Shown piece by piece: positions 13,227 to 29,092 of a stretch of DNA of 64,000 nucleotides. The notes under the pieces are model-generated. The model made no database searches, was not told the DNA's origin, and worked only from the letters and a program-made list of their open reading frames with translations. Location of the stretch: NCBI RefSeq assembly GCF_000009045.1, contig NC_000964.3, positions 3,968,001 to 4,032,000 on the forward strand. The letters run 5' to 3'. The DNA comes from Bacillus subtilis subsp. subtilis str. 168 (GTDB lineage Bacteria; Bacillota; Bacilli; Bacillales; Bacillaceae). Within the stretch, counting starts at the first letter, position 1. Every line of letters begins with the position of its first letter. Both the position numbers and the translations under genes were made by a program.

Positions 13227-14915
13227 ATGCCTATGGGAACTCATCTATTTCTCTTTATGCTTCTCGGGCTGGGATTTTATTTGATATCAGCCCTAGCTGC
13301 AAAACTCATTCCGGCCATAGACTTCTGGATTGATATTGTTCTATGGGTCGGCGCTGCGGCTTACATCTTCTCTCATCTCTCATTCATGGACGGCATTGTC
13401 TCACTCGCGACAATGTTCTACTGCTATTGGACCGCAATGGATCTCATTGTTTCAGAGCGTGTGGAAAAACCTTCGGGAGACTGGCAGGAAATCGAGCTTG
13501 CCAAAAACAAAACACGCCTCCTGTCAGACATTACGCTGACCGCCATTGTGTTTGCAGGGGCTGTCATTTTTTTCATCTATGGACCTGACACAAGCCCTCT
13601 CAAATATGTGATCCTTCTCGGAATGATCTCCGGCGGAGGGGCACTTGTGAAGCGAATACTGAATGTTTTTAGCGTAAAGGTTTTTTATTCAGCAGCCTTA
13701 GAAAAATTGCATATCAGCTCACACTATGAAACCCGTACATACCCGCTTTCCGATTTGAAGAACATTCAGCTTGAATCAACAGCAGATCTCTTAAAGCTCC
13801 ATCCGCTTCTGACGATGTATTCATCCCGTTTAGATTTGACAACAAGCTTTCAGCAAGTCATTAAACTGTCTCTTCCCGGCGAAACACTGTTTCTGACGGT
13901 GAAGGAACCGCAAAAATGGAAAACAATTCTTCAGGAATACACAGATGCAGAAAACAATGTGGACAATGTGATTTCTGTTTTGCCGTTTTATCATCGAAAA
14001 AATGTGAAGCGGCTGCTCGGTAAGCTTTATTTTGCCGCCAGCGTAAAAGGGGTATCCGCTTACGCCTTATTGGTGCTCGCGTTATACGCATTACACGCCT
14101 CTCCATGGGTCATGGCTGTTGCCGTAATCCTATATTGGGTATTCAACATGTATATGTCAGACCGTGTGTTGCGGGCGGCGATGGACGCCAAGTCTTGTCA
14201 TCATCCGCATGTACAGGCCGCGGCCGATAAGATTTTCAGATCGGCCGGCATTTCCCATGTCCGCATATACGAAACGGAGAGTGATGATTACAACGGAATG
14301 GCAGTAGGCATGAATGTCGGGAGGTCAATGGTCATCCTGACAAGCGCCACACTAACACTTCCACAGCGTGTCATTGAAGGCATTCTGGCCCATGAGGCGA
14401 TTCATATCAAAAAACGTGACGTTCTGTCATCACAGCTTTTGCGTTTTCTATATCTTGGAGCTGTCGTGGGGATTTTCCTCTTGTTTGAGCAGCATATCAC
14501 CCATCCCGAGGCCCACAAAATTGCGCTTTGGGCTTTCATTATGGCAATCATTATCCTATTCCAGCTCTATCAATCCTTTTGTTCACAATGGATGGAGGTG
14601 CGTGCTGACAACCTTGGCGCATCATTGCTGGACGGCGGTTACAAACAAATGGCTGAAGCCTTGAGAATCTTGGCGGTTCGGCAAGATGAGGATATACAGA
14701 AACAAAGTGCCTATAGCTCTGAAGCAGGTGAAGACGAGCTTCAAATTGATTCTCTCACCCGTGATAAAAGCTGGTTTTTCAGATTGATTGATTTTCAGTT
14801 CGCTCCTCATCCTCCTATGTATTGGCGTGTCGGCACTTTATTGTCAAACAAAGGACATGGGGTGCTAAAGCGCTGGCTCAGAGACCGACTGAAAGAATCG
14901 ATCACTTTGAAATGA
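13227..14915 (+). CDS. yxkI: Membrane M48 (HtpX-like) zinc protease with N-terminal membrane extension
   Basis: GILAHEAIH (HExxH), EVRAD, HPPMYWR; start at ATG 13227 after AAAGGA. Confidence 0.85.
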
Positions 14916-14972: not shown

Positions 14973-15173
14973 GTGATTGTGATCATCTTATTGTTTATAT
15001 CTATTATTGTTTTTCTTTCAGTCATTCAGCCGCAGCCCTCGAAAAACAAAAGCCGCCAGCAGGCGGACAGCGGGTATTTCGGTTATTCAGATCATAGCTC
15101 ACACCATGATGGATGCAGCAGTGACGGAGGTTTCAGCGATTCCGGCTGTGGCGGCGGAGGGGGCGGCGATTAA
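14973..15173 (+). CDS. yxzE: Small membrane-anchored protein with His/Cys/Gly-rich tail
   Basis: 66 aa, N-terminal hydrophobic segment, tail DHSSHHDGCSSDGGFSDSGCGGGGGGD; AAGGGAG RBS, GTG start. Confidence 0.8.
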   Translation: MIVIILLFISIIVFLSVIQPQPSKNKSRQQADSGYFGYSDHSSHHDGCSSDGGFSDSGCGGGGGGD

Positions 15174-19926: not shown

Positions 19927-20763
19927 TTATTTAGATATATCCACAAACCCTTCGCCAAACACATCGCGTACGTCATGTACGATCACAAACGCTTTTTTGT
20001 CGCAGCTTCTAATGATTTTTTTCAGCATAGACAGCTCCTGTTTGTTAATGACGATATACAAAATCTCTTTTGACTGGCCCGTATAATTTCCCTTCCCTGA
20101 TAAAATCGTCACGCCCCGATCCATCAAGGTATTTACCTGCTCTGCAATCTCACTCTTATTTTCTGAAATGACCGTAATGGCTTTTTTCGTATTCAAACCT
20201 TCAATAATGAAGTCCATCACTTTGGTACCGATATACAGCATCACGATCGTAAACATCATTTTTTCTGCACCAATAATAAAATAAGAGCTAAATACTACGA
20301 TTAAATCAAAAAACAAGAGTGCATAGCTGATATTCCAGTCTAAATATTTATTAGCAATTCTGGCCAGAATCGCGGAACCGGCCGTCGTCCCGCCGACCCG
20401 GATAATCATGCCGATCCCGACTCCGGCAAATACACCTGCGAAAATCGTATTAATGATCAATTCATCAGACGGAATGCTCCACCCATGTGTCAGATGAAGA
20501 AAAAGCGAATTTGCCGCAACCGCAATGATCGTATAAACCGTTGTTTTTCCATCAAGAAACTTGTAGCCGATTAAAAGCAAAAACGCATTTAAGATAAAGT
20601 TCGTGACACCAGGAGACCATTGAAACAGATAATACAAAATCAGCGTAATCCCAGTGACTCCGCCTTCCCCAAGATCATTGGGAATCGCAAATAAATTAAC
20701 CGCAAGCGCGAAGAAAAAAGCGCCAATCACAAGCATAAGTACATCCAGCATTCTCTTTTTCAT
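19927..20763 (-). CDS. yxkD: YitT family membrane protein (DUF161/DUF2179)
   Basis: IPNDLGEGGVTG, GGTTAGS, RGVTIL.GKGNYT, DKKAFVIVHDVRDVFGEGF; ATG 20763 after AAGGAG. Confidence 0.88.
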   Translation of the reverse strand: MKKRMLDVLMLVIGAFFFALAVNLFAIPNDLGEGGVTGITLILYYLFQWSPGVTNFILNAFLLLIGYKFLDGKTTVYTIIAVAANSLFLHLTHGWSIPSDELIINTIFAGVFAGVGIGMIIRVGGTTAGSAILARIANKYLDWNISYALLFFDLIVVFSSYFIIGAEKMMFTIVMLYIGTKVMDFIIEGLNTKKAITVISENKSEIAEQVNTLMDRGVTILSGKGNYTGQSKEILYIVINKQELSMLKKIIRSCDKKAFVIVHDVRDVFGEGFVDISK

Positions 20764-20802
20764 CACGAAAACACTCCTTTTCATTGTTCTGTTCTAGCAA
20801 AT

Positions 20803-25161: not shown

Positions 25162-26382
25162 ATGAACGGACAAACTCCGGCTCGGCACTACTACAAGAAG
25201 CTTGTGCCGAGCCTTATTCTCATTTTGAATTGCATACAATTTTTATCTCATCCAACTAAGGCTGATCCCATTTTGTTAGCATTTGTATTTGCGGTATACT
25301 TAGCATTCATTTGGATCATTCCCTATGTGGCATCCACTGCTGTTAGTTTGAGCATATTCATCGGACTCTGGCTCCTGACCGATTTCTTTTGGGCTGTTTC
25401 CGGCCAAGAGCAGGGTGCCGCCTATTTTTTGATTGTATTTTTAATGATATATGCCGCCTTTAGACTCCCTTCACGGCTATCCTTGATCTTCACAGCATGT
25501 TTAATTGGAGGCAACATATTACTCCTATCCTCACAAGGGGGAAGCTTGAATACCATCATCAGCAACATCTCGATCATGCTCGGTCTGTACGTCCTCTTCT
25601 CCTCCATGCGTTTCAGACGAGAAGCGAGAAGGGAGGCTGAACGGAATCATGCTGAATTGGCAAAAATGCATGTGCAGCTGGAGCATGCTCATAAAGAACT
25701 CCAGAAAGCGCATGCAGAGCTGCAGGAGGCTTCTGTTCTTTCATTAAGGTACGCGGTCCTTGAGGAACGTACAAGAATTGCCCGCGACATTCATGACAGC
25801 ATCGGTCACGAGCTGACTTCTGTGATTGTTCAGCTTCAATCCCTTCCCTATATCCTTAAAAGCAGCAAGGAGGATTCAGAAAAAGTCATTCAAAATGTAC
25901 TGAGTGTCGCCAGGGAGTGTCTTCAAGAAGTGCGGTCTGTTGTTCACCAAATGGGCCGTAGTGAATCGATGGTGGGGCTTACCGCTTTGCGGGGGCTCAT
26001 TCATCAAGTGGAGGAACGGAGCGGCTTGCACGTTTCTTTAGATACTGCCGGACTGTCAGAAGAGTCTTGGCCTCCAAACGTGAGCGAAACGATCTACCGC
26101 ATCTTGCAGGAAGCGCTGACCAATATCATTCGTCACGCTGACGCTTCTCATGCGGCGGCCGTCATTTCTAATGACAAGTCCCATCTCTATGTCACAATCA
26201 CCGACGACGGACAATTCACCGGCAGCCTTACTTATGGATTTGGCCTGACAGGAATGAAAGAGCGCGCAGAAAAAGCAGGCGGTTCCCTTACTTTCAGTGC
26301 CGTACAGCCGAGCGGCCTGAAAATTGAGCTGTCATTGCCGCTCATGACAACGAATAAGGAGCAAAAAGATGAACAAAGATAA
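25162..26382 (+). CDS. yxjM: Membrane histidine kinase, HisKA_3 (DesK/LiaS-like)
   Basis: EERTRIARDIHDSIGH, RILQEALTNIIRHA, DDG, GFGLTGMKER. Confidence 0.93.
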   Translation: MNGQTPARHYYKKLVPSLILILNCIQFLSHPTKADPILLAFVFAVYLAFIWIIPYVASTAVSLSIFIGLWLLTDFFWAVSGQEQGAAYFLIVFLMIYAAFRLPSRLSLIFTACLIGGNILLLSSQGGSLNTIISNISIMLGLYVLFSSMRFRREARREAERNHAELAKMHVQLEHAHKELQKAHAELQEASVLSLRYAVLEERTRIARDIHDSIGHELTSVIVQLQSLPYILKSSKEDSEKVIQNVLSVARECLQEVRSVVHQMGRSESMVGLTALRGLIHQVEERSGLHVSLDTAGLSEESWPPNVSETIYRILQEALTNIIRHADASHAAAVISNDKSHLYVTITDDGQFTGSLTYGFGLTGMKERAEKAGGSLTFSAVQPSGLKIELSLPLMTTNKEQKDEQR

Positions 26383-28311: not shown

Positions 28312-28343
28312 AAAAGCCAGTCCAAAAAAGGACTGGCTTTTTT
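28312..28343 (+). terminator. pepT terminator
   Basis: AAAAGCCAGTCC-aaaaaa-GGACTGGCTTTTTT. Confidence 0.88.
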
Positions 28344-28352
28344 GTGTGAAAA

Positions 28353-28379
28353 TGAAACATTTTAAACACGTCCTCCGTA
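28353..28379 (+). promoter_or_regulatory. Putative ECF (SigW/SigM-type) promoter for the 28412 small ORF
   Basis: TGAAAC-N17-CGTA (canonical spacing is 16). Confidence 0.5.
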
Positions 28380-28411
28380 AAACAAGTATCAACAAATGAG
28401 GAGGAAAAACA

Positions 28412-28540
28412 ATGACAAAACATGCAATCGCTGCCAAGAGTCTCTTGAAAAAATGGATCATTTCCAGGCCGCTTAACATGAAAAAGAAATCCAGCCCATT
28501 TCAAAAAATCAGAAAAATGTTCAAACGCTTCTTCAAATAA
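28412..28540 (+). CDS. 42-aa cationic amphipathic peptide, function unknown
   Basis: GAGGAGG RBS (28398-28404), ATG 28412; MTKHAIAAKSLLKKWIISRPLNMKKKSSPFQKIRKMFKRFFK; below the ORF-track length cut-off. Confidence 0.7.
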   Translation: MTKHAIAAKSLLKKWIISRPLNMKKKSSPFQKIRKMFKRFFK

Positions 28541-28582
28541 AACATCAAATCCCCTAAATACAATCCGTATTCACCCGTACCG

Positions 28583-28610
28583 CCCAAATGCTCCGTAATT
28601 TGGGTTTTTT
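28583..28610 (+). terminator. Terminator after the 42-aa ORF
   Basis: CCCAAAT-gctccgta-ATTTGGG-TTTTTT. Confidence 0.65.
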
Positions 28611-28612
28611 GT

Positions 28613-28636
28613 GTTCAATTCCGCAAAATAGGGTAT
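28613..28636 (+). promoter_or_regulatory. Putative SigB promoter upstream of yxjJ
   Basis: GTTCAA-N12-GGGTAT. Confidence 0.55.
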
Positions 28637-28828
28637 AAACCAAACAAGCAAGAAAACAGCACCCAAAAACAGGTAATTCGAATTACGTAAACTTAGGTTA
28701 AAAGTTATATAAAGGAATTTATTTTATCGTCGATAGTAACTATAGAACCAATCATCAACAAGAGCAAACAGCGTAATTCAAGACTATTTTCAGGTCATCA
28801 GGTAATACTGTTTTAGAGGGACAGTTTC

Positions 28829-29092
28829 TTGTTATTTATTGATTTAGAATTTTTTGAATACTTTTTGGCATTTTATCCGTACAATAGAGAGTACCAAAAC
28901 TTTTTTTGGGAGGTATGTAATATGATCCTATTTATTATCATCGCATTATGCGGCTATCTTCTTTTTTCTTTCAGCAAGGACAATCGCCGCAAACCGCAAA
29001 AGACAAGCCCTCTGCCAGCAGCCGCACCTCATCACAACAACCTAATCGACCTTGACGCCATCCGCCAAAAACGCCGGATGCATCTTTCCTAA
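28829..29092 (+). CDS. yxjJ: Small single-TM protein (alternative start 28922, 56 aa)
   Basis: TTG 28829 with AGAGGGA, and in-frame ATG 28922 with GGGAGGT; hydrophobic MILFIIIALCGYLLFSF then basic tail. Confidence 0.7.
   Translation: MLFIDLEFFEYFLAFYPYNREYQNFFWEVCNMILFIIIALCGYLLFSFSKDNRRKPQKTSPLPAAAPHHNNLIDLDAIRQKRRMHLS

Follow-up and report, generated by a model that had tools for sequence, protein, structure and literature searches.

A conserved small open reading frame in the SigW-dependent transcript S1495 (ncr1421) of Bacillus subtilis very probably encodes a polycationic peptide

Introduction

In 2010 Irnov et al. published a list of small RNA (sRNA) candidates in Bacillus subtilis. 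One of them, ncr1421, is a transcript of 223 nt that lies between pepT and yxjJ (genome positions 3996388-3996610, + strand), and only a + strand transcript was listed at this locus. The authors stated that open reading frames (ORFs) had not been examined among their candidates (PMC2965217). The tiling-array segment S1495 (Nicolas et al., 2012; Zweers et al., 2012) comes from the same intergenic region. It was described as an 'independent' segment, labelled 'ncRNA', and classed as 'core sigma-W' (Zweers et al., 2012; PMC3498285). Here we describe this transcription unit in a window of 64,000 nucleotides (the whole stretch of DNA analysed) from B. subtilis 168, in which it carries an ORF of 42 codons, referred to below as the small ORF. 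Positions are those of the window, and the genome coordinate is the window position plus 3,968,000. The best reading of the evidence is that S1495/ncr1421 acts as a monocistronic mRNA, from which a conserved peptide of 40-43 residues is made, and not primarily as a non-coding RNA.

The closest precedents are SR1 and SR7 of B. subtilis, which are likewise short, stress-regulated 'sRNAs' that were later found to encode proteins of about 40 residues (39 aa). SR7 comes from the same list of Irnov et al. and is also controlled by an alternative sigma factor. The peptide described here has no sequence similarity to SR1P or SR7P, which bind the soluble proteins GapA and enolase, and SR1 and SR7 differ further in having demonstrated base-pairing or antisense functions. 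In its physical character the predicted peptide is closer to SpoVM and to the C-terminal membrane-targeting sequences of MinD and FtsA, in which a short cationic amphipathic helix with a bulky hydrophobic face is also found with neither a transmembrane segment nor a signal peptide. This likeness, as modelled, is physical only: the peptide is not homologous to these proteins, is much more highly charged (+14), would have a second helix, and is under SigW control. Cationic antimicrobial peptides and leaderless bacteriocins resemble it in size, in the absence of a leader, in a Lys-rich amphipathic helix and in a Pro-containing hinge. They are set apart by the peptide's fixed core-genome position, its unusually high charge density, and its lack of export and immunity genes and of any family match.

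The transcript described here has the locus, strand, 223-nt size, SigW dependence and core-regulon membership of S1495/ncr1421. What differs is its status, since the literature treats it as a non-coding RNA or sRNA candidate and we find in it a conserved ORF under purifying selection. No paper was found in which S1495 or ncr1421 is treated as coding. The initial annotation of this DNA, which was made from the sequence without database searches, gave no earlier description and implied that the transcription unit was new. In this it was mistaken, because the transcript had already been catalogued as a non-coding RNA and many GenBank genomes carry the ORF as a 'hypothetical protein'. Public before this work were the transcript, its regulation, and a database record that says no more than 'hypothetical protein'; what we add is the coding evidence, the definition of the family, with 12 lineages if B. 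atrophaeus is counted, and the structural reading.

S1495 is among the most strongly SigW-dependent features of B. subtilis, comparable to fosB and yoaG. Its coding status shifts the study of this transcript toward frame-specific alleles, tagging, localisation and lipid binding, and away from the hunt for sRNA targets. It also adds a very unusual product, with a charge of +14 and no transmembrane segment, to a regulon with a logic of membrane protection. After SR1P and SR7P, this would be a further small protein hidden in the 'sRNA' lists of B. subtilis, which argues for its inclusion in the reference annotation. Since the gene is confined to the B. subtilis complex and B. atrophaeus, any function is lineage-specific, and this limits its general impact.

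Evidence for a protein-coding sequence

DNA of the locus was collected from 11 lineages of the B. subtilis complex, and the B. atrophaeus locus was retrieved with the neighbouring yxjJ as an anchor. Ten species of the complex were aligned, and the more distant eleventh lineage, L093, was added for a second count. The ORF is intact in all 11 lineages, and B. atrophaeus has a diverged version of it. The Shine-Dalgarno (SD) sequence and the start codon are kept throughout; the SD is GAGGAGG in nine of the ten aligned species, GAGGGGG in the tenth and AGAGGAG in B. atrophaeus, and the start codon is GTG in one lineage.

Variation in the ORF is concentrated at third codon positions. In the 10-species alignment the variable columns at the first, second and third positions number 10, 6 and 26 of 40, and with L093 included they number 13, 10 and 28 (Fisher p = 3e-5). 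The ratio of nonsynonymous to synonymous substitution rates (dN/dS), calculated by the method of Nei and Gojobori for each sequence against that of the window, is 0.07-0.24. The dS values of 0.2-1.8 are comparable to those of the adjacent pepT (0.30-0.75), so the low dN does not merely reflect slowly evolving DNA. Constraint is unevenly distributed along the frame: the ratio of the corresponding proportions of differences (pN/pS) reaches 0.43 in the linker, against 0.13 in codons 2-16 and 0.08 in codons 26-41. In the 10 species the sole indel within the ORF is an in-frame AAA, while in the 41-nt 3' untranslated region (UTR) several indels have lengths not divisible by three. Each of the two alternative frames contains 0-4 stops, and no sequence has both of them open.

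Judged by this pattern of substitution, the ORF is a genuine coding sequence on which purifying selection acts. It is very probably protein-coding and functional as a peptide, and it is presumably translated in vivo. A comparison of the frame across Bacillus had been proposed with the initial annotation, and its outcome, an ORF preserved in 11 lineages and in B. atrophaeus with low dN/dS, favours the coding claim made there.

The transcription unit and its control by SigW

The gene order around the unit is yxjM-yxjL-pepT-yxjJ-yxjI-yxjH, from the ORF list of the window with gene names taken from the published papers. The initial annotation had described a self-contained unit consisting of a SigW-type promoter, an SD, a 42-aa ORF and a hairpin with a T-run, and each of these elements lies where it had placed them (Table 1). 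The pepT terminator, which is kept in the 10 aligned species, insulates the unit from pepT, and the unit's own terminator is essentially invariant across the same species. The mapped start of ncr1421 falls 9 nt past the CGTA element, and its mapped end coincides with that of the terminator T-run. Within the SD region an in-frame TGA (28397-28399) precludes a longer N-terminus, and the N-terminus of the product is thereby fixed. Rfam matches to Thr_leader, Atu_C9 and STnc390 scored far under the gathering thresholds, were positioned over the terminators, and were rejected.

Table 1. Features of the small-ORF transcription unit and the adjoining end of pepT (window positions).
Feature	Position	Strand	Description
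pepT 3' end	28307	+	
pepT intrinsic terminator	~28312-28343	+	stem GCCAGTCC / GGACTGGC, A6 loop, T6 tail; read from sequence
ECF (extracytoplasmic function)/SigW-type promoter	28353-28379	+	TGAAAC 28353-28358 (-35), 17-nt spacer, CGTA 28376-28379 (-10)
Transcript, ~223 nt	28388-28610	+	ncr1421 3996388-3996610 minus offset 3,968,000; taken to be tiling-array segment S1495
Shine-Dalgarno GAGGAGG	28398-28404	+	7 nt before ATG 28412
Small ORF, 42 codons + TAA	28412-28540	+	product MTKHAIAAKSLLKKWIISRPLNMKKKSSPFQKIRKMFKRFFK
Codons 30-41 (FQKIRKMFKRFF)	28499-28534	+	near-invariant, strongly amphipathic C-terminal helix (predicted); proposed membrane-docking element
C-rich motif UCCCC in the 3' UTR (UCCUC in other species)	28550-28554	+	weak RNA-level (anti-SD-like) candidate
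Intrinsic terminator of the unit	28582-28611	+	8-bp stem GCCCAAAT / ATTTGGGT at 28582-28605, 8-nt loop, T-run

The promoter class is overrepresented in the window, where TGAAAC-N15-18-CGTA occurs five times against 0.43 expected, a number reached in none of 100 shuffles. Two further SigW-type promoters with N16 had been reported in the window and were found, at 14913 and 29159; they precede a small membrane-protein ORF and yxjI, respectively. The remaining two matches, TGAAAC-N17/18-CGTA at 20621-20647 (+) and 25588-25615 (-), lie within ORFs that run the other way, the first in a minus-strand ORF (19927-20784) and the second in the plus-strand yxjM, and are probably due to chance.

In the promoter of the small ORF, GAAAC, the spacer of 17 nt and CGTA are invariant in the 10 species, and the first base is T in five and C in five. 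The N17 layout recurs in the L093 lineage and in B. atrophaeus, so that the spacing is invariant across 12 lineages. A spacer of 16 nt is usual for SigW; taking TGAAAC and CGTA separated by about 16 nt as the mark of the class, we count this promoter as a member.

The SigW dependence of the unit follows from the published tiling-array data on S1495, in which the signal changed by log2 -2.89 (q<0.05) when sigW was mutated and by -1.16 and -1.19 in rasP and prsW mutants, respectively. The segment was placed in expression cluster C9 together with sigW and was given a predicted sigma-WXY promoter (Zweers et al., 2012; PMC3498285). We infer that S1495 is the unit described here from its position and from the occurrence of only one sigma-W-type promoter between pepT and yxjJ. 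With its own promoter and terminator, and with the drop of its signal in the sigW mutant, the unit can be regarded as self-contained, as originally proposed.

Properties of the predicted peptide

The 42-residue product contains 11 Lys, 3 Arg and 1 His, with no Asp, Glu or Cys, in agreement with the composition first reported. Lys and Arg make up 33% of the residues and the net charge is +14; a net charge of +12 to +14 is found in all orthologues, including that of B. atrophaeus. AlphaFold2, run with a 13-sequence alignment, predicted two helices (residues 3-18 and 29-41) joined by a Pro-containing basic linker (19-28), with a mean predicted local distance difference test score of 80.

An amphipathic periodicity in the C-terminus had been noted in the initial annotation and is borne out by the calculation. 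The hydrophobic moment (µH) of the C-terminal helix is 0.80-0.84 with its maximum at exactly 100 degrees, a value reached by 0.3% of shuffles of the same residues; for codons 30-41 the µH is 0.83. In the predicted helix F30, I33, M36, F37, F40 and F41 share one face, five Lys or Arg residues occupy the other faces, K42 follows, and the helix charge is +5 to +6. This C-terminus is also the most constrained segment of the peptide, as seen from the pN/pS for codons 26-41 given above, and in B. atrophaeus the C-terminus (FKKIRRLFKRLF) retains the hydrophobic/basic pattern with a µH of 0.89. The HeliQuest-type lipid-binding discriminant is 2.4-2.8 (threshold 1.34).

No signal peptide was found in the peptide, nor a transmembrane segment: the maximum Kyte-Doolittle value over 15 residues is 0.61, and lysines break every hydrophobic run. 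On prediction, the peptide thus combines the characteristics of a membrane-binding amphipathic helix, namely a helix of high µH with positive charge, in a sequence with neither transmembrane segment nor signal peptide. Searches of Pfam, NCBIfam, PADLOC, PDB sequences and Foldseek-PDB gave no match to the peptide.

Distribution

The exact peptide is present in NCBI nr, where it is called on 266 contigs, and homologues recorded as 'hypothetical protein' in GenBank come from B. subtilis, spizizenii, tequilensis, stercoris, mexicanus, vallismortis, inaquosorum and others. The orthologues are 40-43 aa long. A profile search of 1.84 billion representative proteins returned only the B. subtilis-group cluster, a homologue in the L093/L094 lineage (P0038, 78% identical) and one artefact. 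The B. atrophaeus copy, of 40 aa, is 53% identical and stands behind TGAAAC-N17-CGTA and an AGAGGAG SD. A scan of metagenomes found just three loci, all B. subtilis-like, and a scan of viral contigs found no relatives of the peptide.

Two database entries were set aside. P0039, the third profile match (E = 4e-9), is an artefact of a 419-nt contig in which essentially every C has been replaced by G. The contig (L095, GCA_007677815.1, VEDJ01000114.1) is from the same locus; the entry is a fault of data quality and not a relative. The 390-aa representative of the peptide's 90% cluster (P0001-P0007) is an unrelated peptidase-like protein from Logan assemblies and reflects a clustering artefact; cluster-level look-ups for the 42-aa peptide are misleading because of this representative.

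Beyond these lineages, tblastn against 79 other Bacillaceae/Paenibacillaceae species, among the matches listed, showed nothing related to the peptide next to pepT. The PepT-anchored contigs were mostly from distant Bacillaceae, with one close relative (L001) among the matches listed, and the PepT homologues listed were dominated by B. subtilis variants and did not extend to B. velezensis. In B. paralicheniformis an unrelated convergent gene occupies the position downstream of pepT. For the B. amyloliquefaciens group the evidence is indirect: the profile search of 1.84 billion proteins gave no match to the peptide and no YxjJ homologue was found.

In every species examined the position of the small ORF is fixed and syntenic, with yxjM/yxjL, pepT, yxjJ, yxjI (LOR domain) and yxjH as neighbours, and no transporter, immunity or modification gene was found at the locus. 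The small ORF and the 56-aa core of YxjJ are intact where yxjI has been deleted (L085) or fragmented (L093). The function of the peptide therefore does not depend on yxjI.

Proposed function and alternatives

The products of the SigW regulon are mostly membrane-related, and some of them confer immunity to peptide antibiotics (Zweers et al., 2012; PMC3498285). We propose that SigW, responding to envelope, alkaline or salt stress, fires the TGAAAC-N17-CGTA promoter, and that the strong SD would then drive translation of a leaderless, polycationic peptide with a modelled helix-linker-helix form. The peptide most likely stays in the cytoplasm, because it has no signal peptide or transmembrane segment and no transporter is encoded nearby. 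The C-terminal amphipathic helix would lie flat against the anionic inner leaflet, and the peptide, once bound, may alter the charge or packing of the membrane surface or associate with a membrane protein, and so contribute to the membrane protection afforded by SigW. A membrane or protein interface is favoured over nucleic acid because the four Phe, with Ile and Met, form a segregated face that calls for a hydrophobic partner, and docking of this kind fits a regulon dominated by membrane-protective functions. We give even odds to this overall picture of a SigW-induced peptide on the cytoplasmic face of the membrane, and we hold the narrower claim, that the peptide binds the membrane surface, to be just as finely balanced. 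For any specific downstream role the likelihood is low at best. One such role, which is speculative and improbable as it stands, is that of an 'inside-out antimicrobial-like peptide' in the SigW response, made in the cytoplasm and coating the anionic inner leaflet or a membrane protein. It might change surface charge, displace peripheral proteins or feed back on SigW, and its mRNA would perhaps base-pair through the C-rich 3' UTR. If this were true, the candidate partners would be the co-conserved 56-aa YxjJ and the RasP/PrsW proteolytic machinery.

Several observations weigh against a membrane-bound peptide as the whole account. Membrane binding is deduced solely from physical chemistry, and the N-terminal helix, which is rich in hydrophobic residues, is not significantly amphipathic in the same shuffle test. 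The composition, 33% Lys and Arg with no acidic residue, would also suit a peptide that binds RNA or ribosomes. The sequence of the peptide was found in no paper by full-text search. Frameshifted versions of the ORF exist in public data (P0033, P0036 and P0037), each on one contig, against about 340 contigs with the intact ORF; the ORF is rich in A-runs and these frameshifts are likely, though not proven, to be sequencing errors. In its 3' third the ORF has diverged somewhat less at synonymous sites (pS 0.36 vs 0.55), and together with the conserved C-rich motif in the 3' UTR this leaves some room for an additional role at the level of RNA.

As an alternative, a basic peptide might bind RNA or ribosomes through its Lys and Arg residues and tune translation or RNA decay during envelope stress, by analogy with small basic ribosomal proteins or with SR1P and SR7P, which act on RNA-degradation partners. 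The charge, which is kept at +12 to +14 in all orthologues, would serve such a role, and the 39-aa peptides encoded by B. subtilis 'sRNAs' provide precedents with cytosolic partners. We consider this unlikely, given that the basic residues are mainly Lys, that six bulky hydrophobic residues (four of them Phe) on one helix face are unlike RNA-binding arms, that the family, PDB and Foldseek searches gave no similarity to ribosomal or RNA-binding families, and that the regulon is predominantly membrane-related. We put at a similarly low level the chance that the RNA has a dual function, serving both as the peptide mRNA and as a base-pairing sRNA in which, for example, the C-rich motif pairs with the SD regions of targets. 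UCCYC is present in all aligned species and is the best-kept part of an otherwise fast-evolving 3' UTR; it appears as CCCTCC in B. atrophaeus and is single-stranded in the predicted fold. SR1 and SR7 are again the precedents, and the lower synonymous divergence toward the 3' end of the ORF points the same way. The rest of the RNA gives a different picture, for the 3' UTR has accumulated many substitutions and indels, the transcript folds no better than shuffled sequences (minimum free energy z-score +0.34), and the only standout of the alignment fold is the invariant terminator. Of the 34 predicted pairs one, within a weak 3-bp helix, shows a compensatory change, which does not amount to meaningful covariation. 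A pairing of the SD (GAGGAGG) with the last codons of the ORF (CUUCUUC) appeared in both the minimum free energy and the consensus folds, with no covariation; it is lost in B. atrophaeus (CGAUUAUUC) and is regarded as coincidental.

An exported peptide, acting from outside on competitors or on the producer's own envelope, was suggested in the initial annotation as a defence or leaderless bacteriocin-like function. A small, leaderless, Lys-rich peptide of helix-hinge-helix form with one strongly amphipathic helix would suit that purpose, as would membership of a regulon with immunity functions against peptide antibiotics. This suggestion has found no support, and we regard it as quite improbable: the neighbours are a two-component system, pepT, YxjJ, YxjI and yxjH, with no transporter, immunity or modification genes among them; the fixed syntenic position and purifying selection are unlike those of accessory bacteriocin loci; and the peptide lacks a signal sequence, matched nothing in Pfam, NCBIfam, PADLOC or PDB, and had no relative among viral contigs. 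Translation of the Lys-rich ORF might instead control read-through of the terminator into yxjJ-yxjI, as in a regulatory leader. One unit is indeed written as 'S1495-yxjJ-yxjI' by Zweers et al. (2012; PMC3498285), and the very conserved residues next to the stop codon, with a run of KKK, loosely recall arrest peptides. Such control is very unlikely, since the stop codon lies 41 nt before the terminator stem, which a terminating ribosome would not touch, and the predicted folds contain no alternative antiterminator pairing. Moreover, yxjJ and yxjI have promoter-like elements of their own, the small ORF is kept intact where yxjI is deleted or decayed, and in B. atrophaeus about 500 nt and another ORF separate the small ORF from yxjJ. 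Least credible of all are a type I toxin and an sRNA that codes for nothing and contains the ORF by chance. The published labels, ncRNA (Zweers et al., 2012; PMC3498285) and sRNA candidate (Irnov et al., 2010; PMC2965217), and the few frameshifted sequences favour a non-coding RNA, but neither paper considered an ORF, and a chance ORF is at odds with the bias toward third codon positions, the low dN/dS, an indel that keeps the frame, and the conservation of both SD and start codon. As to a toxin, the peptide has no hydrophobic transmembrane stretch, and a consensus scan limited to sigma-70-type sites found no promoter-like site on the minus strand in 28350-28620.

Neighbouring genes

The spacer of about 310 nt between the terminator of the small ORF and the yxjJ ATG (28606-28921) is 83-91% identical over 11 lineages and has long invariant blocks. 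Immediately past the terminator, at 28613-28636, is GTTCAA-N12-GGGTAT, which we take to resemble a SigB-type promoter. A start about 9 nt past GGGTAT would fit the 183-nt 'long leader' ncr1422 of Irnov et al., if this is measured to the TTG at 28829. The spacer matched no Rfam family, and little covariation is seen in its alignment fold.

The conserved part of yxjJ (28829-29092) is a 56-aa ORF that starts at ATG 28922 (MILFIIIALCGY...), with a GGGAGG SD, a single N-terminal transmembrane helix and a basic tail. The gene is called as 56, 61, 75, 84, 87 or 92 aa depending on the genome, and the 87-aa form from TTG 28829 may be too long at its N-terminus. Every lineage with the small ORF, B. atrophaeus included, also has the 56-aa core.

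The SigW-controlled gene yxjI (LOR, or LURP-one-related) is decaying in several lineages. It is largely deleted in L085 and L086 (L085 3227-3356), split into fragments in L093 and L094 (L093 3811-4231), and reduced to 121 aa in B. atrophaeus (L096 3851-4216). The flanking small ORF, yxjJ and yxjH are intact in the lineages in which yxjI decays. In B. atrophaeus an insertion of about 500 nt (L096 2640-3170) lies between the small ORF and a remnant of the terminator with the GGGTAT element, and because of it the small ORF is not followed by the same terminator in this species. The insert carries a called ORF of 69 aa (2758-2967) that is absent from B. subtilis.

Elsewhere in the window the SigW-type promoter at 14913, TGAAAC-N16-CGTA, precedes an ORF of 66 aa (14973-15173) with an N-terminal hydrophobic segment and a Gly/Ser/Asp/His-rich tail that ends in GGGGGGD. 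Like the 42-aa peptide, this product and the 56-aa YxjJ are small and lie by TGAAAC-N16/17-CGTA promoters, but both have an N-terminal hydrophobic transmembrane segment and the 42-aa peptide has none. The 66-aa ORF is probably yxzE, which is listed as SigW-regulated along with S1489 (Zweers et al., 2012; PMC3498285).

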